Shown here one piece after another: positions 42,011 through 64,000 of a stretch of DNA of 64,000 bases. The notes beneath the pieces were generated by a model, which was not told where the DNA came from, did not search any database, and saw only the letters and a list, made by a program, of their open reading frames with translations. How positions within the stretch are numbered: position 1 is the stretch's first letter; each line of letters opens with the position of its first letter. A program made the translations under genes and the position numbers. The stretch is from Macrostomum lignano (lineage: Eukaryota), in assembly GCA_002269645.1 (NCBI GenBank), contig NIVC01000108.1, positions 124,001 through 188,000 on the forward strand, given 5' to 3'.

Positions 42011-45000
42011 ATGCACCTGTGCAGTGCTGGGCCCAGTGCTTTGCGCCAGTTGTTGCTGTTAGCACTGCTTTCTATAGCGGTTTCTGCTGCACCTGACAAA
42101 TGCAGCGTCTGCAACCGCCTGACAGAGGCTTTTGAGCAAGGCCTGCAGCGCACCGCCAAGGACAACTTTGGCGGGGGCAACACGCACTGGGAGGAGAGCC
42201 GCCTTGGCAGCTGGGCCAGCAGCGAAACTCGCCTTGTGGACATACAGGTAAAGCATTTGCATCCCAATTGCAGTTTTAATCCTCTACAAATAAATCTAAT
42301 TGTTGTTTCACCAGCTCATCCAAATCCAGACACCCGAATCTCGAATTTGAGTATCCCGAATTCCAGAGTTCTGAATCCCAGAATCCAAGAATCCCGAATC
42401 CCAATAACCTAGAATCCTGAATCCGAGAATCCCAAATCCCAGAATCTCGAATACTGAATCCGAGAATCCCAAATCCCAGAATCTCAAATCCTGAATCCGA
42501 GAATCCCGAATCCCAGAATCCCGAATCCCAGAATCCCGAATCCCAGAATCCCGAATCCCGAATCCCCGAATCCCGAATCCCAGAATCTCGAATCCTGAAT
42601 CCCAAAATCCAGAATCCCATCCCAGAATCTCGAATCCCATAATCCCAGAATCCCGGATCCCAGAATCTCGAATCCCCGAATCCCGAATCCCAGAATCCCG
42701 AATCCCACCATCTCGAATCCCGAATCTCGAATCCCAGAATCCCGGATCCCAAAATTCCGGATCCCAGAATCCTGGATCCCAAAATTCCGGATCCCAGAAT
42801 CCTGGATCCCAGAATCTCGAATCCCAGAATCCCCAATCCCGAATCCCAGAATCCGCGAATCCCAGAATCCCAAATCCCGAATCTACGAATCCCAGTTTCG
42901 GACGCCCCATCAGGCAGCAACTGAGATGGCCATATAAAACCCTCCGCTGCCTGGCAGGAGCGCCTGTGCTCAGACGAAGGCAAGGAGGAGGCGGTGGCCT
43001 GTCACGCCCTGCTCGAGCAGTTCGAGGAGCCTCTCGAAGGCTGGTGGTTTGGCGACTTCCGCCGAGATCCGGGCAAATCCGCCGCCAAGGCTGCCGCCGC
43101 CCTGCGCGAACTGCTGTGCGTGCGGACCGGCGGCCTCTGCTGCCAGCACGGCGCCTTCGGGCCACAGTGCGCCGCCTGCCCCGTCTGCGGCCTGCGCGGC
43201 CACTGCGACGGCAATGGGACCCGCGCAGGCAGCGGCCGCTGCACCTGCGACTCCGGCTACCGGGGTGAGCTGTGCGACCAATGCGAGACCGGCCGCTACC
43301 TGGCCACCGCCGAGCCGCTCCTCTGTCTCGCCTGCCACCCCGCCTGCGGCTCCGCCGGCTGCGTTGACGGCCCCAGCGAGTCCAACTGTCGCGACTGCGC
43401 CACCGGCTACCAGCCGGCCGAGGCCTCCGGCGCTGCCGACGGCAGAGTCTCCTGCATCGACGTGGACGAGTGCGCGGCCACGCCCGGGCCCTGCGCCGGG
43501 CCGAACGAAACCTGCGTGAACTCGCCCGGCAGCTTCGCCTGCGACTGTCTGCCCGGCTTCCAGAGACCCGCGGCTGGCGGCGACTGCCAGCCCGCGGAGA
43601 CCGCGGCTGGAACTGACGGCGATTCCGCGGAAACTGGTGGCGATTCCGCGGAAACTGGTGACGATTCCGCGGAAAGTAGCGGAGAATCCGCGGAAACTGG
43701 CGGAGAATCCGCGGAAACTGGCGGAGAATCCGCGGAAACTGGCGGAGAATCCGCGGAAACTGCTACTCCAGCTATGGATAAGGGTACGTTAGTGTTAGTT
43801 GTTACTGCAGTCTTATATAACTGCAGCTAGTTACCACCGCTGCCCCCTCCTCAGTCCTTCAGTGAGCCACCACTGCCTCACCCTCAGTCCCTCAGTGAGC
43901 CACTGCCTCACCCTCAGTCCCTCAGTGAGCCACTGCCTCACCCTCAGTCCCTCAGTGAGCCACTGCCTCACCCTCAGTCCCTCAGTGAGCCACCACTGCC
44001 TCACCCCCAGTCCCTCAGTGAGCCACCGCTGCCCCCCGTCCTCAGTCCCTCAGTGAGCCACTGCCTCACCCTCAGTCCCTCAGTGAGCCACTGCCTCACC
44101 CTCAGTCCCTCAGTGAGCCACTGCCTCACCCTCAGTCCCTCAGTGAGCCACTGCCTCACCCCCAGTCCCTCAGTGTGAGCCATCGCTGCCCCCTCCTCAG
44201 TCCCTCAGTGAGCCACCGCTGTCCCCCCTCAGTCCCTCAGTGAGCCACCGCTGTCCCCCCTCAGTCCCTCAGTGAGCCACCGCTGCCCCCCTCAGTCCCT
44301 CAGTGAGCCACCGCTGTCCCCCCTCAGTCCCTCAGTGAGCCACCGCTGCCCCCCTCAGTCCCTCAGTGAGCCACCGCTGCCCCCCCTCAGTCCCTCAGTG
44401 AGCCACCGCTGCCCCCCCTCAGTCCCTCAGTGAGCCACCGCTGCCCCCCTCAGTCCCTCAGTGAGCCACCGCTGCCCCCCTCAGTCCCTCAGTGAGCCAC
44501 CGCTGCCCCCTCAGTCCCTCAGTGAGCCACCGCTGCCCCCCCCCTCAGTCCCTCAGTGAGCCACCGCTGCCCCCCCTCAGTCCCTCAGTGAGCCACCGCT
44601 GCCCCCCCTCAGTCCCTCAGTGAGCCACCGCTGCCCCCTCAGTCCCTCAGTGAGCCACCGCTGCCCCCCCCCCTCAGTCCATCAGTGAGCCACCGCTGCC
44701 CCCCCTCAGTCCCTCAGTGAGCCACCGCTGTCCCCCCTCAGTCCCTCAGTGAGCCACCGCTGTCCCCCCTCAGTCCCTCAGTGAGCCACCGCTGCCCCCC
44801 TCAGTCCCTCAGTGAGCCACCGCTGTCCCCCCTCAGTCCCTCAGTGAGCCACCGCTGCCCCCCTCAGTCCCTCAGTGAGCCACCGCTGCCCCCCTCAGTC
44901 CCTCAGTGAGCCACCGCTGCCCCCCTCAGTCCCTCAGTGAGCCACCGCTGCCCCCCTCAGTCCCTCAGTGCGCCACCGCTGCCCCCCCTCAGTCCCTCAG

Positions 45001-45160
45001 TGAGCCACCGCTGCCCCCTCAGTCCCTCAGTGAGCCACCGCTGCCCCCCCCTCAGTCCATCAGTGAGCCACCGCTGCCCCCCCCCCCCAGTCTCTGAGTG
45101 TGGACCGCAGCCTCTGAGACATCCAGCCGTCCTTCATCAATAATTTCAGAGGAGCTGTGA
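42011..45160 (+). CDS. CRELD2: CRELD2-like cysteine-rich EGF protein, ~370 aa; join(42011..42247,42958..43783,45111..45160)
   Basis: Signal peptide; CSVC (CXXC); DNFGGGNTHWEE..SETRLVDI; CHALLEQ.EE.LEGWWF; EGF with GNGTR.GSGRC; furin-like repeat; cbEGF CIDVDEC. No TM segment. Modelled last exon ends ..IISEEL*. Phases 0 and 1 fit. An alternative acceptor at 45091 would give a different tail. Confidence 0.88.
42320..42900. repeat. Intronic degenerate 7/8-bp repeat (GAATCCC / GAATCCCA)
   Basis: Fills most of CRELD intron 1. Confidence 0.92.
43610..43762 (+). repeat. Coding 21-bp repeat encoding (G-G/D-E/D-S-A-E-T)n in the CRELD tail
   Basis: GGCGGAGAATCCGCGGAAACT and variants, about 7 copies, in frame. 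Confidence 0.9.
43812..45090. repeat. Intronic minisatellite, ~29-33-bp unit C(n)TCAGTCCCTCAGTGAGCCACCGCTG
   Basis: Fills CRELD intron 2; variable C-run. Confidence 0.97.
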
Positions 45161-45729
45161 TCGCCAAGGCCGCCCGCCCACCGAGACTCCCCAAGTTAAT
45201 TGTGCCAATTCATTGAGTTCGTCTTGTGGACGTTCCTTTTTATCAGCAATTTCGCGAATAGAATATTAAAAATTAAAGTAAATGCTCTGCGCTTTCCTCA
45301 CGTCGTGGCTGATTTTCAATTGCTCTCTGTTTCTGCCTCAGTTTGCTCCTCTCTGCTTTTATTTGCGCCCGTCTGCCTTCGATCGGGCAGCTTTTGTTGC
45401 CGCAATGAGCCGTGCAGTAATCCTGTTAACTGTTAGTCAGTTGTCCTGCTATGCCCAACCCAAGGTTAAATGTTCTCTTGCTTTGAAGTGACATTGTCTT
45501 GATTCTGAGTGTGTCAAATATAATTATATAACTTACAACTGCCTTGATGTGACCAGTTGCTTCTTACAACTGGGGGATCAGCAAATCTAAACTTTTGTGC
45601 CAGTTTTTGCATTTCCTGCGTTTATTATTTGTTAACCGCGGAGTTCAACTCGCTTGAGTGGCTTCAGAGTGAACTCTCGGTCGATTAGAACCATGAAGGA
45701 CAACTCAAGTATTGTCTTAAGCAGTTCTT

Positions 45730-46782
45730 GATTAGAAGCCGCTCGGTTATTGGGTGACATCACTCCGGACTAGAAGCCGCTCGGTTATTGAGTGACATCA
45801 CTCCGGATTAGAAGCCGCTCGGTTATTGAGTGACATCACTCCGGATTAGAAGCCACTCGGTTATTGAGTGACATCACTCCGGACTAGAAGCCGCTCGGTT
45901 ATTGAGTGACATCACTCCGGACTAGAAGCCGCTCGGTTATTGAGTGACATCACTCCGGACTAGAAGCCGCTCGGTTATTGAGTGACATCACTCCGGACTA
46001 GAAGCCGCTCGGTTATTGAGTGACATCACTCCGGATTAGAAGCCGCTCGGTTATTGAGTGACATCACTCCGGACTAGAAGCCGCTCGGTTATTGAGTGAC
46101 ATCACTCCGGACTAGAAGCCGCTCGGTTATTGAGTGACATCACTCCGGACTAGAAGCCGCTCGGTTATTGAGTGACATCACTCCGGACTAGAAGCCGCTC
46201 GGTTATTGAGTGACATCACTCCGGACTAGAAGCCGCTCGGTTATTGAGTGACATCACTCCGGACTAGAAGCCGCTCGGTTATTGAGTGACATCACTCCGG
46301 ATTAGAAGCCGCTCATCTGGGTTAAGGAGTGACCCCACTCCGGACTAGAAGCCGCTCATCTGGGTTAAGGAGTGACCCCACTCCGGACTAGAAGCCGCTC
46401 ATCTGGGTTAAGGAGTGACCCCACTCCGGACTAGAAGCCGCTCATCTGGGTTAAGGAGTGACCCCACTCCGGACTAGAAGCCGCTCATCTGGGTTAAGGA
46501 GTGACATCACTTCGGACTAGAAGCCGCTCATCTGGGTTAAGGAGTGACCCCACTCCGGACTAGAAGCCGCTCATCTGGGTTAAGGAGTGACATCACTTCG
46601 GACTAGAAGCCGCTCATCTGGGTTAAGGAGTGACCCCACTCCGGACTAGAAGCCGCTCATCTGGGTTAAGGAGTGACATCACTTCGGACTAGAAGCCGCT
46701 CATCTGGGTTAAGGAGTGACCCCACTCCGGACTAGAAGCCGCTCATCTGGGTTAAGGAGTGACATCACTCCGGACTAGAAGC
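45730..46782. repeat. Compound minisatellite: 38-bp unit block followed by related 43-bp unit block
   Basis: TAGAAGCCGCTCGGTTATTGAGTGACATCACTCCGGAC, then from ~46303 TAGAAGCCGCTCATCTGGGTTAAGGAGTGACCCCACTCCGGAC. Confidence 0.97.
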
Positions 46783-47339
46783 CACTTGACCTGTATCAGT
46801 CTGACATCACTCCAGGTGAGTAAAAATAACTGAACCAGTGAAATGAGCACACAGTTTTCCTTCAGAGTCATTGGGTGAGACAGAACGCGTCTGACCCGGC
46901 CCCTCATACGAGCGTACAGATTGGAATTCAATAATTGTATTTTCAGAGTTGATGCAGCCACTTTAACATTATCCGTAGAGCAGAGATGCTGAGGATTAAA
47001 GAAACAGTAACACAGTAACAAAGTATAAACAAATTATCGTACAATACAATAGCTGGTGTACAAAGTACAGCATCAGATGCATCCGTGAATAAGAATTAAT
47101 TTCAACACAAAGGCAAGGGTCTTCAGTTCTCAAATATACTCAATTTTTTGCGGCATAAGGTAAAGTTGGCGCACTTTCGAACTTTCAAAAAAAATAAAAA
47201 AAACAAAAGCAGAGATACTGCAATTTAAAATATTCACAGCAAAGATAAAGCAATGAACACACCTACGGGGTTTTAAAACCACACGCTGTGCAATGAAAAT
47301 ATTTTAATATTTTAGGACGTAATGATTCAGCCTGCATCT

Positions 47340-47810
47340 CAACTACCTGTCTGCCTACCACTGCACCTCAGCTACCTGTCTGCCCATCACTGCACCTCTG
47401 CTACCTGTCTGTGTTCATCACCGCACCTCAGCCACCTGTCTGTGTTCATCACCGCACATCAGCCACCTGTCTGCCCACCACCGCACCTCTGCCACCTGTC
47501 TGTGTTCATCACCGCACATCAGCCACCTGTCTGCCCACCACCGCACCTCTGCCACCTGTCTGTGTTCACCACCGCACATCAGCCACCTGTCTGTGTTCAT
47601 CACCGCACATCAGCCACCTGTCTGTGTTCATCACCGCACATCAGCCACCTGTCTGTGTTCATCACCGCACATCAGCCACCTGTCTGTGTTCATCACCGCA
47701 CATCAGCTACCTGTCTGCCTATCACTGCACCTCTGCTACCTGTCTGCCCATCACTGCACCTCTGCTACCTGTCTGCCCATCACTGCACGTCTGCTACCTG
47801 TCTGCCCAAT
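47340..47810. repeat. Minisatellite, ~31-bp unit CAGCCACCTGTCTGTGTTCATCACCGCACAT
   Basis: Direct reading; degenerate ends. Confidence 0.92.
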
Positions 47811-47936
47811 TGCTAGACCATTCTGCCGCTATATTTTATCAGGCAATATAAGCTTAGATTTGAAAAAAAGTCAATCAGATTTGAACCAGCACAGCTTATG
47901 ATCAGTCTGAAAGTTAATAACGAAATCCCCAGTCAG

Positions 47937-49388
47937 TTACAGCAGTTGCTCAGCCTGGATGCTCCGCAGCGCCCGCTGAATGAGCTGCCTGAAGCCGCGT
48001 TCGTGCGCCAGGCTCATCATGAGCGACTCCATCGGCTTCTCAGACATCTTGGCGAGCATCACCGCGGTGCCGTGTTCGCCCGAGAATGCGTTGAGGAACG
48101 CGGTCTCCTTGCCGGTGTCGGCGAGGCCGCTAAGCAGGCGGTGCAGCTCAGCGTCGGAGAGGCCGAGAGGCTGCTGCGAATCCGCGGCCTCCGGCAAAGA
48201 CGAGGCAGCCGGGGCGGCGGCGGCCGACGGCACCGTCGTCTGGCGCTGCAGGTCGCCCGCCGGCGCGGTGCACATGCCGCTGTCTATGGTGCCCACCGCG
48301 CTGCCAGCCGACTTCAGCCAAGTCTCTTCCGCTGCTGCCGCCTCATTTCCGCCTGCGGCCTCCGAGATGCCCGGCTGCAGCTGCTGCTCGAACAGCTCCT
48401 TGAGCTCCGGTCGGTCGGCGGCGAGCTCCTCGGCCGTGACGCCGTCGCTGTCCTCCTCCAGCGGGTCGGCACCGCTGTCCAGCAGGAACCTGACCGCCCG
48501 AGCGGCCCCGGCACTCACAGCTGACATCAGCGGTGTCCACCGCTTGCCGCGGTGCTGCCTCTCGTCCAGGTTTACGCTGATGCCGGCATCTCTGGCGAAC
48601 TGCAGCAGCGGGCTCAGCATGTCCTCCCTGTCCCGAGCTGCCATCATGTGAAGCACCGTGTCACCCGCCCGGTCATTCATGTGGATGGCGGCAGACACCT
48701 GTCCCGCTGCGAGCCGGCCCTCCTCGATCAGCCTCTTTGTAACCCGCAGACCGGAGACGAGCACCTCCGTGGACTCCTCCAGCGCGCAGTGGTGCAGGAA
48801 GTTCCTACCGTCGTTGTCGTACAGTCGGTGAAGCTGGGTCGGCTCCCGGATCAGCAGGCGCTCCATCAGGCTGTCGGCTGAGCTGCCGCTCTGCGTGCTG
48901 AGCATGAGCAGACTTTCTCGATGGCGAGTCCGATCGTCAAGGGCGTCGGGGTTTCGCTTGACCGCAATGTCCACCAGCTTCTCGGCCCGCTCGCCCTGCT
49001 GCCTCGCCAGCGCGGACGCCATCGGGTTGTCGCCATCGCTGTTGTGGACTCTCAGCATCTCGGAGCTGTCCTCGAACGCCTTCAGGAGGATGTCCTCACA
49101 GTTGTCGCCCTCGCTGTACTGGTGCATCGCTGTAGCCAGGATTCTGGGGTACTCGAGCAGCAGGCGGCGCTGCATGTCCTGCGGCAGGGAGCGAAACCTC
49201 AGCGATTCCGGAGTCTCAGGAGCTGGACCATCAGCTCCCAGACTTAACTGCTGCATTTGGTCTTCCACACTGATGTCGCTGGCTCTTGCAGGTTTTTTGC
49301 TTTTCTCTTCTAATTTTTTATCCATGAGCAAGTCTGCTTTTTTATTGGCTAGGTCTATTCTGCAATGCAAAACATCATTTTCATACAT
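47937..49388 (-). CDS. Ankyrin-repeat protein copy A (N1-core-C1), up to 483 aa, DSGMCT degron-like motif, death-fold-like tail
   Basis: Ankyrin motifs SDGDNPMASALA, NDGRNFLHHCA, DRAGDTVLHMMAA, RWTPLMSAV..AVRFLLDSGADP and SDGVTAEELA. The AT-rich N-terminus makes the true start uncertain. Confidence 0.85.
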   Translation of the reverse strand: MYENDVLHCRIDLANKKADLLMDKKLEEKSKKPARASDISVEDQMQQLSLGADGPAPETPESLRFRSLPQDMQRRLLLEYPRILATAMHQYSEGDNCEDILLKAFEDSSEMLRVHNSDGDNPMASALARQQGERAEKLVDIAVKRNPDALDDRTRHRESLLMLSTQSGSSADSLMERLLIREPTQLHRLYDNDGRNFLHHCALEESTEVLVSGLRVTKRLIEEGRLAAGQVSAAIHMNDRAGDTVLHMMAARDREDMLSPLLQFARDAGISVNLDERQHRGKRWTPLMSAVSAGAARAVRFLLDSGADPLEEDSDGVTAEELAADRPELKELFEQQLQPGISEAAGGNEAAAAEETWLKSAGSAVGTIDSGMCTAPAGDLQRQTTVPSAAAAPAASSLPEAADSQQPLGLSDAELHRLLSGLADTGKETAFLNAFSGEHGTAVMLAKMSEKPMESLMMSLAHERGFRQLIQRALRSIQAEQLL

Positions 49389-50299
49389 TTTACATACATT
49401 TCTTTTAATTTTAACAGTCTATACCATATGCACTGATACTATACAAAGTATAGATATATAAGTTTATGATAAGGAACTACAATTTTAGTTTATTAGATAT
49501 TTTTTAAACAAAAAATTGTATGAATTAGACATAAACAGATATTTTTTAACTTATTTTTTGCTTTAACTAAATAATGGATTATTATAAACTATTCAATTGT
49601 GATACAAAATATTTTGAATAACAAACAAGGTATTCATCACAGGTATGGATCCAGAAAATTTTAAATGGGAGGATGCAGATTACTAAGGTATATGTAATAT
49701 ACACTCAGCAACATCAAAAAGTCGCCATCACAGAAGATTCCTTTTTGAGAGGGCAGCAGGTAAAGTCTCTCAATCTTTGCGAGTGACGCAACTTAGCTAC
49801 ACCGTGGCAGACTTGAGTTGAGGAACAAAGTGGGGGGAGTGGTGTGCAAGGGTTGGATGGATCATAGCTACCCCAATCAGTTTTCTTGTATATTTTATTT
49901 CAGAATAGTCCAAGAGAAATTGCTCACTGGCGCATAGAGTGGCAACTTTTCAACATTGCTGAGTATATATATATATATCATATATATGCATATCATATTA
50001 CATATATGAGACAGGCATTAATAATAGCTCTAATACTTTTAAATTTTACTCGTTTTATGTTTGCCTTTCTTAGAAAAACCTTTATTCAAATCTGCGCAAA
50101 ATATTTGTTTGAATGTTGTGGTTTGCAAAAATATTTCTGCAATTATTATTTTGTTTAAACTATAATGCATTGTGGGTATAAATAGACATGCTGAGCAGAC
50201 TTGAGGAAGCAACCATTTGCTGCCTCTTGGTTTTTCGATAAGCAAATTTAGTTTGTTCTAAATATTGAAATCGCTTAAAGACTTAATCATTTCTTAGAG

Positions 50300-50812
50300 T
50301 ATAAGAGCCCCAATTGGGAGTATCAGAAACCGCTACAAGCGAGAAACCGCCTCAGGGCAGTAATAGTAAATTCGCCTCAGGGCAGGAGAACCGCCTCAGA
50401 GCGAGGGAAAGATTGCCTCAGGGCAGAGAAGGAGCACAAGCTGTGACCCTCTGATCCAGGGAACGCCCAGGACTAAGAGAATAATATTAGAGAAAGTATA
50501 GGAATAGAATAGACAGTGCTATTAGACCGCTCAGGCCAGAAAAGTACGATAGAAGTACATACGCTACCAATAGAAAGACAATTAATAACCAGTAGAATTA
50601 TTAAGGAGAAATAGCTTTATTACAACTTTGGGTGGCAGTTAGGATTCTCAGTGTACAGGGAAAAGCACTGTGACAACTTGGTAACAGCAGAGGGATTTTG
50701 TATCGTACAGAAGAAACCCCTAGTACAACTTGGTGGCATAACAGTGGAATTCTCATAGAGAGCCAAAAGGCCTAGTAAAGCTAGCAAAAGAATAATTAAG
50801 AGCCCTGTAACA
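50300..50812. mobile_element. Possible LTR-retroelement remnant
   Basis: Ends in TGTAACA; contains three ACAACT-TGG.. PBS-like junctions and CGCCTCAGGGC subrepeats. No partner LTR or pol sequence in the window. Confidence 0.3.
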
Positions 50813-51058
50813 TATATATATGTACACAATAATGTGTATTTTCCATATAAGAAATAAAAAAAATTCTAACTCAATGAAGGATGGCCTGTGTACCTCCCCC
50901 AAAGTCTGCCACTGATTCAATATTATTTATATAGTTTTAAAATATGATTAGGCCTAAAGTCTTTGCAAATATATTTTAACTAGGCCTAAGCCCTAAGGCT
51001 ATAGCTTCATTAAACTCGTTGTATAGGCCTAGACATTATGTTATATGAATGGTGAAAG

Positions 51059-52002
51059 ACCTGTATAACTTTCGCCGACACATTTTCAGACAGATCTTCC
51101 GACACATTTTACGACACTTAAAATGTCGCAAAGTGTCAGAAAAAGTGTTGGAAAAGTTGACATTTGCCGACACATATTTTCCGACACCTAAAGTAATGCT
51201 GCAGTGTCTGATGCTTTACTTCTGCCAACACATCTTCCGACACTTAAAATGTCACTTCTTAGAGCGAGGTCATATACATGTAGCTCGTACTATTCATGTT
51301 AGCTTCATGTATGTTTGTTAAGGTACTGCAGCAGACTGCAGTGTTGCGCATCATTTAGTTGCATCAATTGATATACACACATGTATATGTACATGTAATA
51401 GTTGGCATTTTCTGATTACAAACAGTACGAGCGTATGTATTGTAAATGAGGGCATGATATTTTCAGTGTCAAATGTATTCGCAGTCAAATTAATACAAAA
51501 AAATGCTAGCTATAATTACTAAGTAAATACATAATACTAAATCCCAGTGAAGTCAGAATATCAGATAATTGTAGTATGGCACTCCAAAGTAATACGAATC
51601 GAAAGCTCGATCTAATTAATGTCCAAATTTTTGAACATTACAGATACTAACTTTTTTGAAATACTTTGTGCATACATGTAGCTACATTTACATGACCTCG
51701 CTCTAAGAAGTGACATTTTAAGTGTTGGAAGATGTGTTGGCAGAAGTAAAGCATCAGACACTGCAGCATTACTTTAGGTGTCGGAAAATATGTGTCTGCA
51801 AATGTTAACTTTTACGACACTTTTTCCGACACTTTTTGCGACATTTTAAGTGTCGTAAAATGTGTCGGAAGATCTGTCTGAAAATGTGTCAGCAAAAGTT
51901 AACCGTTGCGACACTTTTTGCGACACTTTTTGCAACATTTTAAGTGTCGTAAAATGTGTCGGAAGATCTGTCTGAAAATGTGTCGGCGAAAGTTATACAG
52001 GT
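51059..52002. mobile_element. Foldback/MITE-like element with >200-bp TIRs
   Basis: ACCTGTATAACTTTCGCCGACACATTTTCAGACAGATCTTCC.. at left and ..GTGTCGGCGAAAGTTATACAGGT at right. Inverted match extends to CTTAGAGCGAGGTCAT. The right arm has an internal ~80-bp duplication. No TSD found. Confidence 0.85.
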
Positions 52003-53666
52003 ATAGGAAAGGCTAGGCTTATGAAAACAAATCCTTTGCATTTAGACTTAAATAGCCCCCCTCTAAGAGTTTGTACAAAGGCATCATTCATCAAGCAAGC
52101 CTTTTTTAAATTAAAATATACTAAACAGACTAAGCTTGCTTTGCCTTTGTTGGGCTCCTATCCTATGCTATGAGATCTATAGTAAAAAATATTTGGAACC
52201 ATTGCTAAATAAATATTTAATGTTATGTTATTAAGACAGATTACTAGATTAGTAACTAACAATTAAACTGAAATTTCTAATTTAATGTAATATATGGAGG
52301 GCTAATCTTTAGTTCCAATTTTCCAAGATAGGCTTAGACATAGTATGAGCATGACACTATTCATTAAATTAAATAGTTGGCCCTAGAAAGAAATGTTTTT
52401 ATATTTAAAGATTTCTAAAATTAATCGGCTACTGGTCACATAGATAGAGACAACTCATTTCAGTGGGGTTTAGCTGTTAAAACCTTTTGTAGGGTCTAAT
52501 ATAAAATAATTATTTAAAATTAATAATAGATAGTCGGGACTAAATAAAGCAAGTGACTGCCAATTTAATTTATAAACTTCACAAGTCTAAATAGAAAATA
52601 AATGTCAATGATATCTCGAAAAGAAATTCCATGATGCAATTAAATAATTTAGGACAATGAAAAAACACAAATCAATACCTATTGAAACATAATAATTCAA
52701 TTAAGGAAAAGAAGTCCCCGGATAATTCATGGAAGAACGAGCGAAGTAGCAGACAAGACAAATACAAGGTACCAAACTTGGCCCTAACGCAAGTCCAAAA
52801 CGAAATTTTAAACGCGGCAGCTCCACGGCAGTTCCACGGCAGTTCCACGGCTAGTCCGTATGCATTCTCTTTCTGTGTCATGGAAAAACCCTTGGCAAGC
52901 CTGGATATACTCGTCAGTAGTGAAGAGTGAAATAAAAAATTCTGAATATTGAGGGTGGCAGAAATAAGAAATGTTGAAATTTTCATCGTTTTAACAGCTA
53001 AATGAACTTGAAGAGCAGATCGCAGTTGCTTTCTAATTCTACACAGTTTTTTAACCGCTTTATGGGCATCTTTGCAACCTGAGAGAATCTTGGAGGTTGG
53101 AGAGGGAGCCCAATAACTGGGGATCTAAAGACTGTGGGCCCAGCCTGAGCATCTGGGAGGAGTCATATCGAAATTGTCTCACAAAAATCCTAAATCCATT
53201 ATTCCCTTTTTAGTGTGAAGTGACAAGAAAAATGCCAGGAAGAAGTCTTCATATTTTTATCTCTTCAATGAGTAGTGACACATGCTTTTACATTGTATTA
53301 TAATTTGAGGTAATTTACAAAGCCCTTTAAATATTCATATCGATGGCAGGGTATTGGATGCACAAACACAAGATCAGAGTATAATGACAAGTATAAAAAA
53401 CTATAAACTGACGTATACAAGCGTATGCTGTTGAGGCTACTAAACTATGAAGACTATCGGGGATAATATACATGGTTTTAGTACAAACAGTGTAAGATTT
53501 TAGTAGCTATATGGATATAGTGTATACCAGCGCAAGTGAACAAGAAGAGCAAACATATGGAATTTTAAACAGTTGTGATGAGGCAAGAACTATTAAGTGG
53601 CTAAATTAGTCAAGTAGCAGTTAAGCTGCACAGCTCAGTTTGCACTGGGGCAAACCGTGCAGCTTA

Positions 53667-55010
53667 TCAACCTTCTTTAACTTCTTTGAAGGCTTGAAGC
53701 AGAGTTTCCCTGCTCACGTGATGGCCATGGGCTCCCCAGATGCTCAGGGCGGCTCTGAGGGGCCGCTCAGAAAGGGTTGCTAATCCAGTGTGATCTGGCA
53801 GACGATCATCAAGAATGCGGAAGAGTGCGCTGAAGAATGCCGAAGTCTTGCCAGTGCTCAACAGTTGGTCCTCCAGACTCGCTAAGTCCATCTCAGAGAG
53901 CTCACTGCCCCGTTGAGGTTCAGCCGAGGCGACACTCGGCGCACTGAGAGACGACACACCGCTGTCAATGGAGCGCACCTGCCCCAACCCGCAATTTGTC
54001 AGCCACGATTCGGCTTTGACCATCGGCGGGACGGCATCGCAACTCGAGTCCGGGTTGTCTTCCTCAGCCTCAGCGATCTCCATGTCTTCTGAGTGCTCGG
54101 ACTGAAGCAGCTCCTTGAGCTCCGGTCGGTCGGCGGCGAGCTCCTCGGCCGTGACGCCGTCGCTGTCCTCCTCCAGCGGGTCGGCACCGCTGTCCAGCAG
54201 GAACCTGACCGCCCGAGCGGCCCCGGCACTCACAGCTGACATCAGCGGTGTCCACCGCTTGCCGCGGTGCTGCCTCTCGTCCAGGTTTACGCTGATGCCG
54301 GCATCTCTGGCGAACTGCAGCAGCGGGCTCAGCATGTCCTCCCTGTCCCGAGCTGCCATCATGTGAAGCACCGTGTCACCCGCCCGGTCATTCATGTGGA
54401 TGGCGGCAGACACCTGTCCCGCTGCGAGCCGGCCCTCCTCGATCAGCCTCTTTGTAACCCGCAGACCGGAGACGAGCACCTCCGTGGACTCCTCCAGCGC
54501 GCAGTGGTGCAGGAAGTTCCTACCGTCGTTGTCGTACAGTCGGTGAAGCTGGGTCGGCTCCCGGATCAGCAGGCGCTCCATCAGGCTGTCGGCTGAGCTG
54601 CCGCTCTGCGTGCTGAGCATGAGCAGACTTTCTCGATGGCGAGTCCGATCGTCAAGGGCGTCGGGGTTTCGCTTGACCGCAATGTCCACCAGCTTCTCGG
54701 CCCGCTCGCCCTGCTGCCTCGCCAGCGCGGACGCCATCGGGTTGTCGCCATCGCTGTTGTGGACTCTCAGCATCTCGGAGCTGTCCTCGAACGCCTTCAG
54801 GAGGATGTCCTCACAGTTGTCGCCCTCGCTGTACTGGTGCATCGCTGTAGCCAGGATTCTGGGGTACTCGAGCAGCAGGCGGCGCTGCATGTCCTGCGGC
54901 AGGGAGCGAAACCTCAGCGATTCCGGAGTCTCAGGAGCTGGACCATCAGCTCCCAGACTTAACTGCTGCATTTGTTCGTCAACTGGTTCCACGTGAGGCA
55001 TGCTGCGCAT
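53667..55010 (-). CDS. Ankyrin-repeat protein copy B (N2-core-C2), 447 aa, DSGVSS degron-like motif, death-fold-like tail
   Basis: Core translation identical to copy A. Distinct tail ..PLRAALSIW...VSRETLLQAFKEV. Candidate acceptor GCGTTAG nine bases upstream of the ATG. Confidence 0.88.
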   Translation of the reverse strand: MRSMPHVEPVDEQMQQLSLGADGPAPETPESLRFRSLPQDMQRRLLLEYPRILATAMHQYSEGDNCEDILLKAFEDSSEMLRVHNSDGDNPMASALARQQGERAEKLVDIAVKRNPDALDDRTRHRESLLMLSTQSGSSADSLMERLLIREPTQLHRLYDNDGRNFLHHCALEESTEVLVSGLRVTKRLIEEGRLAAGQVSAAIHMNDRAGDTVLHMMAARDREDMLSPLLQFARDAGISVNLDERQHRGKRWTPLMSAVSAGAARAVRFLLDSGADPLEEDSDGVTAEELAADRPELKELLQSEHSEDMEIAEAEEDNPDSSCDAVPPMVKAESWLTNCGLGQVRSIDSGVSSLSAPSVASAEPQRGSELSEMDLASLEDQLLSTGKTSAFFSALFRILDDRLPDHTGLATLSERPLRAALSIWGAHGHHVSRETLLQAFKEVKEG

Positions 55011-55371
55011 TGCTTGGGCCTAACGCTTTGCTTGTTGTAGATATATGAGCAGATTATAATTTAGTTCCAGGTTCAAAGCCTGCAAGCGTATTATAAATAT
55101 ACCCAGGTTAGAATTCTTGCCCGCGGCCGTTCTTTTGGTAACCCGCGAGCAATCCACGGATTCGTCTGAACGATGCTATTTTTAGCACTGGCATAATATG
55201 GAACCGCGTAAAGCGAACGTACTTTGACAGGCACACAATGTGGACCAGAATTTGCTATGCTTTTACTTTAAATTCACTGTCTAAGCTCTAAGCTAATTAA
55301 TAATTGCTTCTTCAAGACTAACCACTGCTAATGCTCAATGTCCAAAAACTGTTTTCTTTAGACCAATTCAC

Positions 55372-56814
55372 TGCTTCCCTCAGTCCAGCCCGCTGTTCCC
55401 CCAGTCCAACCCGCTGTTCCCTCAGTCAAACCCACTGTTCCCTCAGTCCAGCCCGCTGTTCCCTCAGTCCAGCCCGCTGTTCCCTCAGTCCAACCCACTG
55501 TTCCCTCAGTCCAGCCCGCTGTTCCCTCCGTCCAACCCACAGTTCTCTCAGTCCAGCCCGCTGTTCCCTCAGTCCAACCCGTTGTTCCCTCAGTCCAACC
55601 CACAGTTCCCTCAGTCCAGCCCGCTGTTCCCTCAGTCCAACCCGCTGTTCCCTTAGTCCAACCCACTGTTCCCTCAATCCAGCCCGCTGTTCCCTCAGTC
55701 CAACCCACAGTTCCCTCAGTCCAACCCACAGTTCCCTCAGTCCAACCCACTGTTCCCTCAGTCCAGCCCGCTGTTCCCTCAGTCCAGCCCGCTGTTCCCT
55801 CAGTCCAACCCACTGTTCCCTCAGTCCAGCCCGCTGTTCCCTCAGTCCAACCCACAGTTCTCTCAGTCCAGCCCGCTGTTCCCTCAGTCCAACCCGTTGT
55901 TCCCTCAGTCCAACCCACAGTTCCCTCAGTCCAGCCCGCTGTTCCCTCAGTCCAACCCGTTGTTCCCTTAGTCCAACCCACTGTTCCCTCAATCCAGCCC
56001 GCTGTTCCCTCAGTCCAACCCGTTGTTCCCTCAGTCCAACCCACAGTTCCCTCAGTCCAACCCACTGTTCCCTCAGTCCAGCCCGTTGTTTCCTCAGTCC
56101 AACCCACTGTTCCCTCAATCCAGCCCGCTGTTCCCTCAGTCCAACCCACTGTTCCCTCAGTCCAGCCCGCTGTTCCCTCAGTCCAACCCACTGTTCCCTC
56201 AGTCCAGCCCGCTGTTCCCTCAGTCCAGCCCGCTGTTCCCTCAGTCCAACCCACAGTTCTCTCAGTCCAGCCCGCTGTTCCCTCAGTCCAACCCGTTGTT
56301 CCCTCAGTCCAACCCACAGTTCCCTCAGTCCAGCCCGCTGTTCCCTCAGTCCAACCCACAGTTCCCTCAGTCCAGCCCGCTGTTCCCTCAGTCCAGCCCG
56401 TTGTTCCCTCAGTCCAACCCACAGTTCCCTCAGTCCAGCCCGCTGTTCCCTCAGTCCAACCCGTTGTTCCCTTAGTCCAACCCACTGTTCCCTCAATCCA
56501 GCCCGCTGTTCCCTCAGTCCAACCCGTTGTTCCCTCAGTCCAACCCACAGTTCCCTCAGTCCAACCCACTGTTCCCTCAGTCCAGCCCGTTGTTTCCTCA
56601 GTCCAACCCACTGTTCCCTCAATCCAGCCCGCTGTTCCCTCAGTCCAACCCACTGTTCCCTCAGTCCAGCCCGCTGTTCCCTCAGTCCAACCCACTGTTC
56701 CCTCAGTCCAGCCCGCTGTTCCCTCAGTCCAGCCCGCTGTTCCCTCAGTCCAACCCACAGTTCTCTCAGTCCAGCCCGCTGTTCCCTCAGTCCAACCCGT
56801 TGTTCCCTCAGTCC
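55372..56814. repeat. Minisatellite, 21-bp unit GTTCCCTCAGTCCAGCCCGCT, with ~504-bp higher-order repeat
   Basis: About 68 copies. Variant TTGTTTCCTCAG recurs at ~56091 and ~56595. Confidence 0.98.
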
Positions 56815-56826
56815 ATCCCCAGTCAG

Positions 56827-58185
56827 TTACAGCAGTTGCTCAGCCTGGATGCTCCGCAGCGCCCGCTGAATGAGCTGCCTGAAGCCGCGTTCGTGCGCCA
56901 GGCTCATCATGAGCGACTCCATCGGCTTCTCAGACATCTTGGCGAGCATCACCGCGGTGCCGTGTTCGCCCGAGAATGCGTTGAGGAACGCGGTCTCCTT
57001 GCCGGTGTCGGCGAGGCCGCTAAGCAGGCGGTGCAGCTCAGCGTCGGAGAGGCCGAGAGGCTGCTGCGAATCCGCGGCCTCCGGCAAAGACGAGGCAGCC
57101 GGGGCGGCGGCGGCCGACGGCACCGTCGTCTGGCGCTGCAGGTCGCCCGCCGGCGCGGTGCACATGCCGCTGTCTATGGTGCCCACCGCGCTGCCAGCCG
57201 ACTTCAGCCAAGTCTCTTCCGCTGCTGCCGCCTCATTTCCGCCTGCGGCCTCCGAGATGCCCGGCTGCAGCTGCTGCTCGAACAGCTCCTTGAGCTCCGG
57301 TCGGTCGGCGGCGAGCTCCTCGGCCGTGACGCCGTCGCTGTCCTCCTCCAGCGGGTCGGCACCGCTGTCCAGCAGGAACCTGACCGCCCGAGCGGCCCCG
57401 GCACTCACAGCTGACATCAGCGGTGTCCACCGCTTGCCGCGGTGCTGCCTCTCGTCCAGGTTTACGCTGATGCCGGCATCTCTGGCGAACTGCAGCAGCG
57501 GGCTCAGCATGTCCTCCCTGTCCCGAGCTGCCATCATGTGAAGCACCGTGTCACCCGCCCGGTCATTCATGTGGATGGCGGCAGACACCTGTCCCGCTGC
57601 GAGCCGGCCCTCCTCGATCAGCCTCTTTGTAACCCGCAGACCGGAGACGAGCACCTCCGTGGACTCCTCCAGCGCGCAGTGGTGCAGGAAGTTCCTACCG
57701 TCGTTGTCGTACAGTCGGTGAAGCTGGGTCGGCTCCCGGATCAGCAGGCGCTCCATCAGGCTGTCGGCTGAGCTGCCGCTCTGCGTGCTGAGCATGAGCA
57801 GACTTTCTCGATGGCGAGTCCGATCGTCAAGGGCGTCGGGGTTTCGCTTGACCGCAATGTCCACCAGCTTCTCGGCCCGCTCGCCCTGCTGCCTCGCCAG
57901 CGCGGACGCCATCGGGTTGTCGCCATCGCTGTTGTGGACTCTCAGCATCTCGGAGCTGTCCTCGAACGCCTTCAGGAGGATGTCCTCACAGTTGTCGCCC
58001 TCGCTGTACTGGTGCATCGCTGTAGCCAGGATTCTGGGGTACTCGAGCAGCAGGCGGCGCTGCATGTCCTGCGGCAGGGAGCGAAACCTCAGCGATTCCG
58101 GAGTCTCAGGAGCTGGACCATCAGCTCCCAGACTTAACTGCTGCATTTGTTCGTCAACTGGTTCCACGTGAGGCATGCTGCGCAT
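56827..58185 (-). CDS. Ankyrin-repeat protein copy C (N2-core-C1 chimera), 452 aa
   Basis: N-terminus and upstream flank match copy B (offset 3175). Core plus tail match copy A (offset 8890). Confidence 0.75.
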   Translation of the reverse strand: MRSMPHVEPVDEQMQQLSLGADGPAPETPESLRFRSLPQDMQRRLLLEYPRILATAMHQYSEGDNCEDILLKAFEDSSEMLRVHNSDGDNPMASALARQQGERAEKLVDIAVKRNPDALDDRTRHRESLLMLSTQSGSSADSLMERLLIREPTQLHRLYDNDGRNFLHHCALEESTEVLVSGLRVTKRLIEEGRLAAGQVSAAIHMNDRAGDTVLHMMAARDREDMLSPLLQFARDAGISVNLDERQHRGKRWTPLMSAVSAGAARAVRFLLDSGADPLEEDSDGVTAEELAADRPELKELFEQQLQPGISEAAGGNEAAAAEETWLKSAGSAVGTIDSGMCTAPAGDLQRQTTVPSAAAAPAASSLPEAADSQQPLGLSDAELHRLLSGLADTGKETAFLNAFSGEHGTAVMLAKMSEKPMESLMMSLAHERGFRQLIQRALRSIQAEQLL

Positions 58186-58546
58186 TGCTTGGGCCTAACG
58201 CTTTGCTTGTTGTAGATATATGAGCAGATTATAATTTAGTTCCAGGTTCAAAGCCTGCAAGCGTATTATAAATATACCCAGGTTAGAATTCTTGCCCGCG
58301 GCCGTTCTTTTGGTAACCCGCGAGCAATCCACGGATTCGTCTGAACGATGCTATTTTTAGCACTGGCATAATATGGAACCGCGTAAAGCGAACGTACTTT
58401 GACAGGCACACAATGTGGACCAGAATTTGCTATGCTTTTACTTTAAATTCACTGTCTAAGCTCTAAGCTAATTAATAATTGCTTCTTCAAGACTAACCAC
58501 TGCTAATGCTCAATGTCCAAAAACTGTTTTCTTTAGACCAATTCAC

Positions 58547-59560
58547 TGCTTCCCTCAGTCCAGCCCGCTGTTCCCCCAGTCCAACCCGCTGTTCCCTCAG
58601 TCCAGCCCGCTGTTCCCTCAGTCCAGCCCGCTGTTCCCTCAGTCCAGCCCGCTGTTCCCTCAGTCCAGCCCGCTGTTCCCTCAGTCCAACCCGCTGTTCC
58701 CTCAGTCCAGCCCGCTGTTCCCTCAGTCCAGCCCGCTGTTCCCTCAGTCCAGCCCGCTGTTCCCTCAGTCCAGCCCGCTGTTCCCTCAGTCCAGCCCGCT
58801 GTTCCCTCAGTCCAACCCACAGTTCCCTCAGTCCAGCCCGCTGTTCCCTCAGTCCAACCCACAGTTCCCTCAGTCCAGCCCGCTGTTCCCTCAGTCCAAC
58901 CCGTTGTTCCCTCAGTCCAACCCACAGTTCCCTCAGTCCAGCCCGCTGTTCCCTCAGTCCAACCCACAGTTCCCTCAGTCCAGCCCGCTGTTCCCTCAGT
59001 CCAACCCACAGTTCCCTCAGTCCAGCCCGCTGTTCCCTCAGTCCAGCCCGCTGTTCCCTCAGTCCAACCCGCTGTTCCCTCAGTCCAGCCCGCTGTTCCC
59101 TCAGTCCAGCCCGCTGTTCCCTCAGTCCAGCCCGCTGTTCCCTCAGTCCAACCCGCTGTCCCAGTCCCACCCGCTGTCTTCACAAGGTCAACCCACTGTT
59201 TCTCCAAGGTCAACCCACTGTTTCTCCAAGGTCAACCCACTGTTTCCCCAAGGCCAATCGACTGTTTCTCCAAGGCCAACCCACTAGTCTAACCCACTGT
59301 TTTCCCAAGGTCGATCCACTGTTTCACCAAGGCTAACCCACTGTTTCCCCAAGACCAACTCAAAAGCCAACCCACTGCTTACCCAAGGCCAACCCACTGT
59401 TTCCCCAAGACCAACTCAAAAGCCAACCCACTGTTTACCCAAGGCCAACCCACTGTTTACCCAAGACCAACTCAAAAGCCAACCCATTGTTTACCCAAGG
59501 CCAACCCACTGTTTTCCCAAGGCCGACATACTGTGTTATCAAGACCAACCCCCGTTTCTC
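58547..59560. repeat. Second copy of the 21-bp minisatellite (58547-~59170) grading into a diverged CCAAGGCCAACCCACTGTTT repeat
   Basis: Direct reading. Confidence 0.93.

Positions 59561-60075: not shown

Positions 60076-64000
<3,925 letters not shown>

Follow-up and report, generated by a model that had tools for sequence, protein, structure and literature searches.

The assembled genome of the flatworm Macrostomum lignano carries three ankyrin-repeat genes, here called A, B, and C, within a 64-kb window of contig NIVC01000108.1 (assembly Mlig_3_7, GCA_002269645.1); the window is the whole stretch of DNA analyzed, and positions are counted along it. The three genes share one core and differ in the N- and C-terminal modules attached to it. 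Their history is probably that of two old tandem paralogs, A and B, whose core was homogenized and between which a single accidental ectopic event then gave rise to C, a hybrid gene present in one of three assembled copies of the locus. The genes and their modules are given below, with lengths in base pairs (bp) or amino acids (aa).

47937-49388, minus strand: gene A (N1-core-C1), an uninterrupted open reading frame (ORF) of 483 aa
53667-55010, minus strand: gene B (N2-core-C2), a single exon encoding 447 aa
56827-58185, minus strand: gene C (N2-core-C1), an ORF of 452 aa
48393-49259, minus strand: core copy in A, 867 bp, 289 aa, ankyrin repeat domain
54108-54974, minus strand: core copy in B, with no difference from that in A
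57283-58149, minus strand: core copy in C, identical to both others, with a hidden switch from B-type to A-type flank inside it
47925-48392, minus strand: C1 tail of A with 12 bp of 3' flank; C has a duplicate of this segment
56815-57282, minus strand: C1 tail of C plus the identical 12 bp, bordering a minisatellite at 56814/56815
53667-54107, minus strand: C2 tail of B
54975-55368, minus strand: N2 peptide (12 aa) and 358 bp upstream of B, holding a TTGCAG splice acceptor at 55080-55085
58150-58543, minus strand: copy of N2 and its upstream region before C, identical to that of B

The first-pass annotation of this DNA, made from the letters and their translations, had described an identical 867-bp core in three places, flanked by modules in the combinations N1-core-C1, N2-core-C2, and N2-core-C1. 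Exact pairwise alignment returned no mismatch in any pair of cores, a result to be read as at least about 99.8% identity, since polishing with short reads by Pilon may erase one or two true differences between near-identical repeats. Three exact copies of this length cannot be ascribed to chance. Gene C matches A exactly over 1335 bp on its 3' side (47925-49259 = 56815-58149) and B exactly over 1320 bp on its 5' side (54108-55427 = 57283-58602), after which B and C both enter a 21-bp minisatellite. Identity between A and B, which lie 5.7 kb apart, ends abruptly at both edges of the core, and the two parental matches of C overlap in the core alone. The extents of exact identity and the ORFs thus agree with the three module combinations, and the earlier description of C as a chimera of A and B holds, with an exact match to each parent on its respective side and no counterpart to C in two other copies of the locus.

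The C1 and C2 tails had been described as homologous yet deeply diverged, and so they are: in a single BLASTP comparison they share 30% identity over 104 aa (E = 2e-5), and BLASTN finds no DNA alignment between them beyond one 21-nt match. Their GC contents are 68% (C1) and 57% (C2), and the upstream regions of A and B cannot be aligned as DNA at all. Pfam recognizes ankyrin repeats only, all of them within the core. A tblastn search of the 64-kb window with A and B found no further copy of the family.

Two further contigs of Mlig_3_7 contain the ankyrin locus, NIVC01000625.1 (L002) and NIVC01001583.1 (L003). Each has exactly two ankyrin genes, in the order B then A, and C is absent from both. 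Their flanks match those of the window, with an NHL-repeat gene on one side and, in L002, an EGF_CA gene on the other. Window positions 55368-47805 (7.6 kb) are collinear with L002 at 99.0% identity and with L003 at 98.3%. M. lignano is a neopolyploid: its subgenomes S, L1, and L2, which diverge by 1.4-1.6%, supply three paralogous copies of about 70% of Mlig_3_7 (PMC10733133); because the observed identities fit this divergence, the three contigs are probably the locus copies of the three subgenomes. Relative to L002 and L003, the window contig has about 3.2 kb of extra sequence, comprising the N2 upstream region, N2, the core, the C1 tail, its 12-bp flank, and a second minisatellite array. 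Gene C therewith appears to be a very recent addition to one of the three locus copies.

The locus copies are themselves mosaic. Between 55368 and about 52644 L003 stands apart, and the window contig hardly differs from L002; between about 52365 and 49459 it is the window contig that stands apart, and L002 hardly differs from L003. This pattern is due either to subgenomes having exchanged sequence or to a chimeric path through the assembly. Assignment of each contig to a subgenome by the divergence of its unique upstream sequence was dropped, the copies being mosaic with a switch near 52.4-52.6 kb. A second peculiarity concerns 47805-49388, a segment that takes in gene A, its N1 region and C1 tail, and the next 132 bp downstream; here the three contigs differ at two core sites only, as against 0.5-2% outside this region; homogenization between subgenomes, strong constraint, or short-read polishing may account for such near-invariance.

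The cores of A and B differ at 0, 2, and 10 of 867 positions in the window contig, L002, and L003, respectively. In L002 the B core equals the window core and the A core differs from it at two sites; in L003 the A core has these same two differences and lacks 1 bp besides, and nine sites of the B core are different. The tails of A and B share 30-37% identity as proteins and are unalignable as DNA in all three contigs. Because near-identical cores are thus paired with unalignable tails in every copy, homogenization of the core is real and older than the split of the three locus copies, and the suggestion of an old paralog pair with a freshly homogenized core stands. The 1-bp deletion in the A core of L003, at about 16330 (equivalent to window 48670), truncates the product (P0008, 236 aa, partial) and marks either a pseudogenized copy or a consensus error.

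A yardstick for the age of the pair is provided by Mlig006948 (P0011), an unlinked M. lignano paralog that is 51% identical to the core. The B tail matches the Mlig006948 tail at 41% identity (score 116) and the A tail at 37% (score 77), so that the tails of A and B are as diverged from each other as from that of an unlinked gene. Core and tails therefore give conflicting relationships with respect to this outgroup: the split of the A and B tails seems about as old as the split from Mlig006948, whose core has diverged by half. By this comparison one of two things must have happened: the core of one gene replaced that of the other, or conversion went on continuously. A single recent overwrite is as plausible as long-running conversion; the last homogenization would have come shortly before the three locus copies separated. 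Core sites 33 and 789, the two at which A and B differ, are exactly those where the A core of the window departs from the A cores of L002 and L003; it has the B state at each, and site 33 shows homoplasy. The two sites fit B-to-A conversion in the window contig; ongoing conversion is unproven, since Pilon polishing with multi-mapping reads could create the same pattern.

Gene conversion limited to part of a duplicated gene is a known form of concerted evolution. The A and B genes resemble such cases in their near-identical tract, diverged flanks, and sharp edges, seen in independent haplotypes or subgenomes. They differ in the extremity of the contrast, with 100% DNA identity in the tract against tails that cannot be aligned as DNA.

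Gene C has two junctions of different character. One is homologous and invisible, and lies somewhere within the 867-bp core. The other, at 56814/56815, is non-homologous; here, 12 bp past the C1 stop codon, the A-derived sequence passes into one of two 21-bp minisatellite arrays.

55369-56819, no strand: 21-bp minisatellite between C and B, about 69 units
58544-59177, no strand: 21-bp minisatellite upstream of C, about 30 units

The left junction of C reads ...TTCCCTCAGTCCA / TCCCCAGTCAG..., and the A-derived sequence meets the minisatellite unit as ...TTCCCTCAGTCCA / TCCCCAGTCAGTTACAG. Only an imperfect similarity, TCCC[T/C]CAGTC, links the unit to the 3' flank of A, and a 30-mer across the junction is absent from L002 and L003. 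The arrays were compared by coding their 21-bp units as sequence variants. In the 69-unit spacer between C and B the order of variants follows that of L002 almost unit for unit up to the breakpoint, beyond which the L002 array continues for seven more distal units before giving way to unique upstream DNA. The array that precedes C resembles that of L002 at both its proximal and its distal end but departs from it in the interior, where the commonest unit abounds.

Through its identity to the upstream region of B, the copy before C carries, at the equivalent of 55296, an allele private to the window contig. On account of this allele, the 5' half of C appears to derive from the B gene of its own haplotype and not from another locus copy. 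Haplotype merging was considered as a source of the 5' half and rejected, the allele being that of the window contig and not that of L002 or L003. A retrocopy origin of C was likewise discarded: C lacks a poly(A) tract, shares no more than 12 bp of 3' flank, and brings with it non-coding DNA from upstream of B.

The annotation of Mlig_3_7 was built from transcript assemblies (PMC5730564). Gene C is annotated at NCBI as PAA90531.1 / Mlig031275g1 (P0009; L001 10001-13113), a 453-aa product with a 3' intron; the PAA90531.1 locus is 100% identical to window 64000-45073 across 18,928 bp. The model was reproduced exactly as an exon at 58185-56831 and a 7-nt second coding exon at 55079-55073, joined across the following GT..AG intron.

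55080-56830, minus strand: intron of the C model, with a GT donor that overlaps the C stop codon and the acceptor TTGCAG

The splice joins AGCAACTGCT to GCTTTGAACC, removes the whole 1.45-kb minisatellite, and uses an acceptor 70 nt upstream of the B ATG. This annotated splice points to transcription of C together with B in a single bicistronic or read-through unit. Gene B is without annotation in NIVC01000108.1, and an identical protein (P0007) is annotated on NIVC01000625.1; a single C-B transcript unit of which the longest ORF was kept would explain the missing model.

For gene A, the NCBI model (P0001, 472 aa) begins at 49355 without a start codon, and the first ATG past a TTGCAG acceptor is at 49325. 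Because this acceptor sits inside the N1 ORF, the true N1 is probably only about 22 aa long. The idea that N1 and N2 represent intron read-through, with the edges of the core as splice sites, was dropped because the edges are not splice sites.

The order of events that would best account for these structures begins in the background, with the core of A or B overwritten or gene-converted before the locus copies diverged, while N-termini, promoters, and C-terminal tails, now deeply diverged, lay outside the converted tract. The near-perfect 867-bp repeat would then have served in the window contig as the substrate for an ectopic event. A break within the unstable 21-bp minisatellite upstream of B may have been repaired from a misaligned copy, with synthesis extending through the B upstream region and N2 into the core; within the core the template would have switched to A, so that the C1 tail and its 12-bp flank were copied, and a short, imperfect microhomology would have let the end rejoin the minisatellite. 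Two steps could give the same outcome: the B-A unit is first duplicated in tandem, with an illegitimate junction, and a deletion from core to core follows. By either route C would acquire the promoter and N-terminus of B and the tail of A. This order, and break repair as the mechanism, are what we infer from the anatomy of the junctions. Gene C looks to be the product of generic ectopic (non-allelic) recombination or template switching in a repeat-rich neopolyploid genome and not of a dedicated shuffling system.

Two classes of known rearrangement are relevant. Hybrid genes formed between tandem paralogs by non-allelic homologous recombination (NAHR) include hemoglobin Lepore, the red/green opsins, RHD-RHCE, and CYP21A2/CYP21A1P. 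As in these, the parents at the present locus are neighboring paralogs in the same orientation with a tract of high identity, the switch falls inside the tract, and the hybrid has the 5' part and promoter of one parent and the 3' part of the other. Unlike them, C lies upstream of intact B and A genes, and its other end is a non-homologous join to a minisatellite, so that a second step or template-switching repair is required. Plain unequal crossover between cores was rejected on these grounds, as it predicts either the hybrid alone or the series B, N1-core-C2, A, and the arrangement found differs from both. Complex duplications produced by template switching during break-induced or stalled-fork replication, known as fork stalling and template switching (FoSTeS) or microhomology-mediated break-induced replication (MMBIR), share with C the pairing of one homologous with one microhomology junction, duplicated material placed beside the original, and a tandem repeat as the site of breakage. 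The difference is that the mechanism is deduced here from junction anatomy alone.

Several facts weigh against an old pair with a recent hybrid. The junction of C and the copy number of three cores are known from the assembly alone, and Mlig_3_7, assembled by Canu from PacBio reads and polished by Pilon with Illumina and RNA-seq reads, is error-prone, with 64% of its bases error-free by REAPR (PMC5730564); scaffolds that mix subgenomes make up 36% of its length (PMC10733133). Pilon with multi-mapping reads can manufacture perfect identity between repeats, which weakens arguments from one or two single-nucleotide polymorphisms (SNPs). The C-B splice is taken from the annotation and not from reads. 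The array of about 30 units upstream of C is unlike the outcome of simple tandem duplication, and needs additional slippage or contraction. An exact-sequence look-up found the 452-aa product of C nowhere else, and so gives C no independent assembly support. One alternative is that C is an assembly artifact, the true haplotype being B followed by A and the extra N2-core-C1 unit arising from a PacBio read that was chimeric or from a false route through the identical core and the minisatellite; in a variant of this explanation, a separate haplotype with a B x A deletion was stitched in tandem to the normal one. An artifact would fit the lack of any difference between C and its parents over 2.65 kb, the presence of C in one of three locus copies only, the oddly short and differently patterned array upstream of it, the unannotated B gene in NIVC01000108.1, and the expanded or collapsed variants and many chimeric scaffolds for which Mlig_3_7 is known (PMC5730564, PMC10733133). 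Nevertheless, we consider it unlikely. The join of the C1 tail and its 12-bp flank to the minisatellite offers too little homology for a false overlap, and a chimeric read would have had to survive both the trimming and the consensus steps of Canu. The transcript-based model of C contains a GT..AG intron from the C stop codon to the acceptor of B, and linear splicing of this kind requires C to lie upstream of B. The upstream copy at C, moreover, has the private allele of the window contig where the other locus copies have theirs.

A second alternative, that the order C-B-A is ancestral and that C was deleted from the other copies through the flanking minisatellite arrays or the N2-core repeats, is quite improbable. 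The direct repeats on both sides, namely the 21-bp arrays and the 1.3-kb copies of upstream region, N2, and core, would readily delete C; however, two independent losses, or one loss together with an exchange, would be needed, the window contig and L002 being sisters in this segment relative to L003 as outgroup. Gene C also has neither divergence from A or B nor changes of its own, and shares the contig-private allele with B, and the L002 array runs its seven units past the C breakpoint without a scar. A late origin of C from homogenized parents is the preferred account.

The first-pass annotation had gone further, proposing that the core may act as a cassette that swaps signaling tails and so might diversify a receptor or adaptor family. 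The strong form of this proposal, in which the core is a selected recombination cassette that recurrently exchanges regulatory tails among family members, is highly improbable, and the locus offers one chimera, in one of three copies, built from two tails. In its favor are the sharp-edged core identity in all three locus copies, the chimera itself, the homoplasy at core site 33, which hints at more than one exchange, and the differences between locus copies in the C2 tail, none synonymous and eight non-synonymous. Against it, two tail types in three combinations are all that occur among the annotated proteins, which comprise A-type, B-type, and C-type products and one fused B+A model from an older annotation; no N1-core-C2 or other further combination of modules, and no other protein with C1 or C2, was found among them. 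Mlig006948, the sole other family locus inspected, is a single gene between unrelated neighbors with a core about 50% identical. The outer junction of C is an illegitimate minisatellite join and not a reusable recombination signal, which argues for accidental rearrangement instead of programmed exchange; no associated recombinase or signal sequences were seen, and the SNP-level evidence is compromised by polishing. Cassette systems resembling antigenic variation draw on a repertoire of many donors, in contrast to the two tails, two N-termini, and three combinations seen here.

The C2 counts derive from a comparison of window 53667-54107 with L003 10904-11353, in which all eight substitutions are non-synonymous, one of them converting the stop codon to Arg, and a 6-bp indel is present as well; the adjacent core differs between the same copies by six synonymous and three non-synonymous changes. 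This hints at a C2 tail that is fast-evolving or under relaxed constraint, the count being too small to carry weight. A weaker form of the proposal, in which recurrent exchange keeps the A and B cores identical and the fast-evolving tails, with their degron-like DSGxx[S/T] motif, are re-paired with different promoters and N-termini often enough for selection to act, is also very unlikely. If it were true, the locus would naturally generate variants of regulatory tails within an IkB-like family specific to flatworms, and C would be the first product to be captured.

An AlphaFold model of B built on a seven-sequence family alignment shows a confident ankyrin solenoid from about residue 70 to 300, where the predicted local distance difference test score (pLDDT) is about 85 or higher. 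It is followed by a linker, 308-369, that is disordered in the model and by a C-terminal bundle of five helices at 373-445 (pLDDT 60-85); a model of B from the single sequence was useless (pLDDT 41). The ankyrin domain has about seven repeats, recognized by Ank_2 and related Pfam models. The best Foldseek match in the PDB is IkB-beta (1oy3_D, E = 3.6e-8, target template-modeling score 0.78), with generic ankyrin proteins close behind, and a sequence search of the PDB with B returned generic ankyrin proteins only. The isolated tails have no Pfam match, death domain included (E <= 10), and a profile of the tails gave only non-significant hits in the PDB, among them the one hint of a death domain, that of p75NTR (E about 0.7-0.8). 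A short motif is located in each tail as follows.

48267-48284, minus strand: DSGMCT motif in the C1 tail of A
57157-57174, minus strand: DSGMCT motif in the C1 tail of C
53949-53966, minus strand: DSGVSS motif in the C2 tail of B, in the predicted disordered linker

The motifs DSGMCT (A), DSGVSS (B), and DSGVQS (Mlig006948) align with one another as a conserved DSGxx[S/T], the form taken by the beta-TrCP phosphodegron in IkB, p105, and beta-catenin; at the level of the motif, they are candidate phosphodegrons. With IkB and the C-terminal halves of NF-kB p105 and p100, the proteins would share an ankyrin domain of about seven repeats and a DSGxx[S/T] motif in a disordered linker, and with p105 a small helical C-terminal domain placed like its death domain. 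They differ in that generic ankyrin proteins score almost as well, in the lack of a Pfam death domain and of a known partner protein, and in belonging to a phylum, the Platyhelminthes, reported to be without p50/p105 (PMC11432056). An IkB-like ankyrin protein controlled by degradation is therefore a lead and not a classification. Beyond generic ankyrin matches, all relatives are M. lignano genes at four other loci, and the A/B family has so far been found in M. lignano only.

The surroundings of the genes are rich in repeats. Between B and A, at 51059-52002, lies a nested inverted repeat with arms of 156 nt (95% complementary), 74 nt (99%), and 67 nt (97%) that looks like a foldback element or one related to miniature inverted-repeat transposable elements; a 94-bp tandem duplication (51790-51995) lies within it, and indels of 12 bp and 24 bp between the locus copies fall in the same structure. 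Upstream of C, a 172-aa ORF on the plus strand (61970-62488) has weak ankyrin similarity, with an Ank_2 match (E = 5e-4) below the Pfam cut-off, and runs into a 991-bp (GCCT)n microsatellite at 62488-63478; an older fused UniRef model (P0010) takes the 61970-63478 region from the other strand. The density of minisatellites near the locus is unusually high (43611-47804 and 60554-61440), and all of them give long spurious ORFs.

43834-45083: 32-bp-unit minisatellite, 1.25 kb
45733-46783: 38-bp-unit minisatellite, 1.05 kb
47359-47804: 31-bp-unit minisatellite, 0.45 kb
60554-61440: 28-bp-unit minisatellite, 0.9 kb

The locus does not call for a new mechanism and is a new instance of known processes. 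Its interest lies in presenting, in a clean and small case, two textbook processes in sequence: partial homogenization of a tandem pair, and then the seeding of a hybrid gene by the identical tract, with dating made possible by three locus copies that are probably the subgenomes of a very young polyploid. For those who work with M. lignano, one copy of the locus may hold an extra and possibly co-transcribed hybrid gene, Mlig031275g1, next to a B gene that is absent from the annotation of NIVC01000108.1, and short-read expression or knock-down data cannot separate A, B, and C over the core. The combination of ankyrin repeats, a DSGxx[S/T] motif, and a helical tail offers, in addition, a modest lead to IkB-like proteins in a phylum reported to be without p105.

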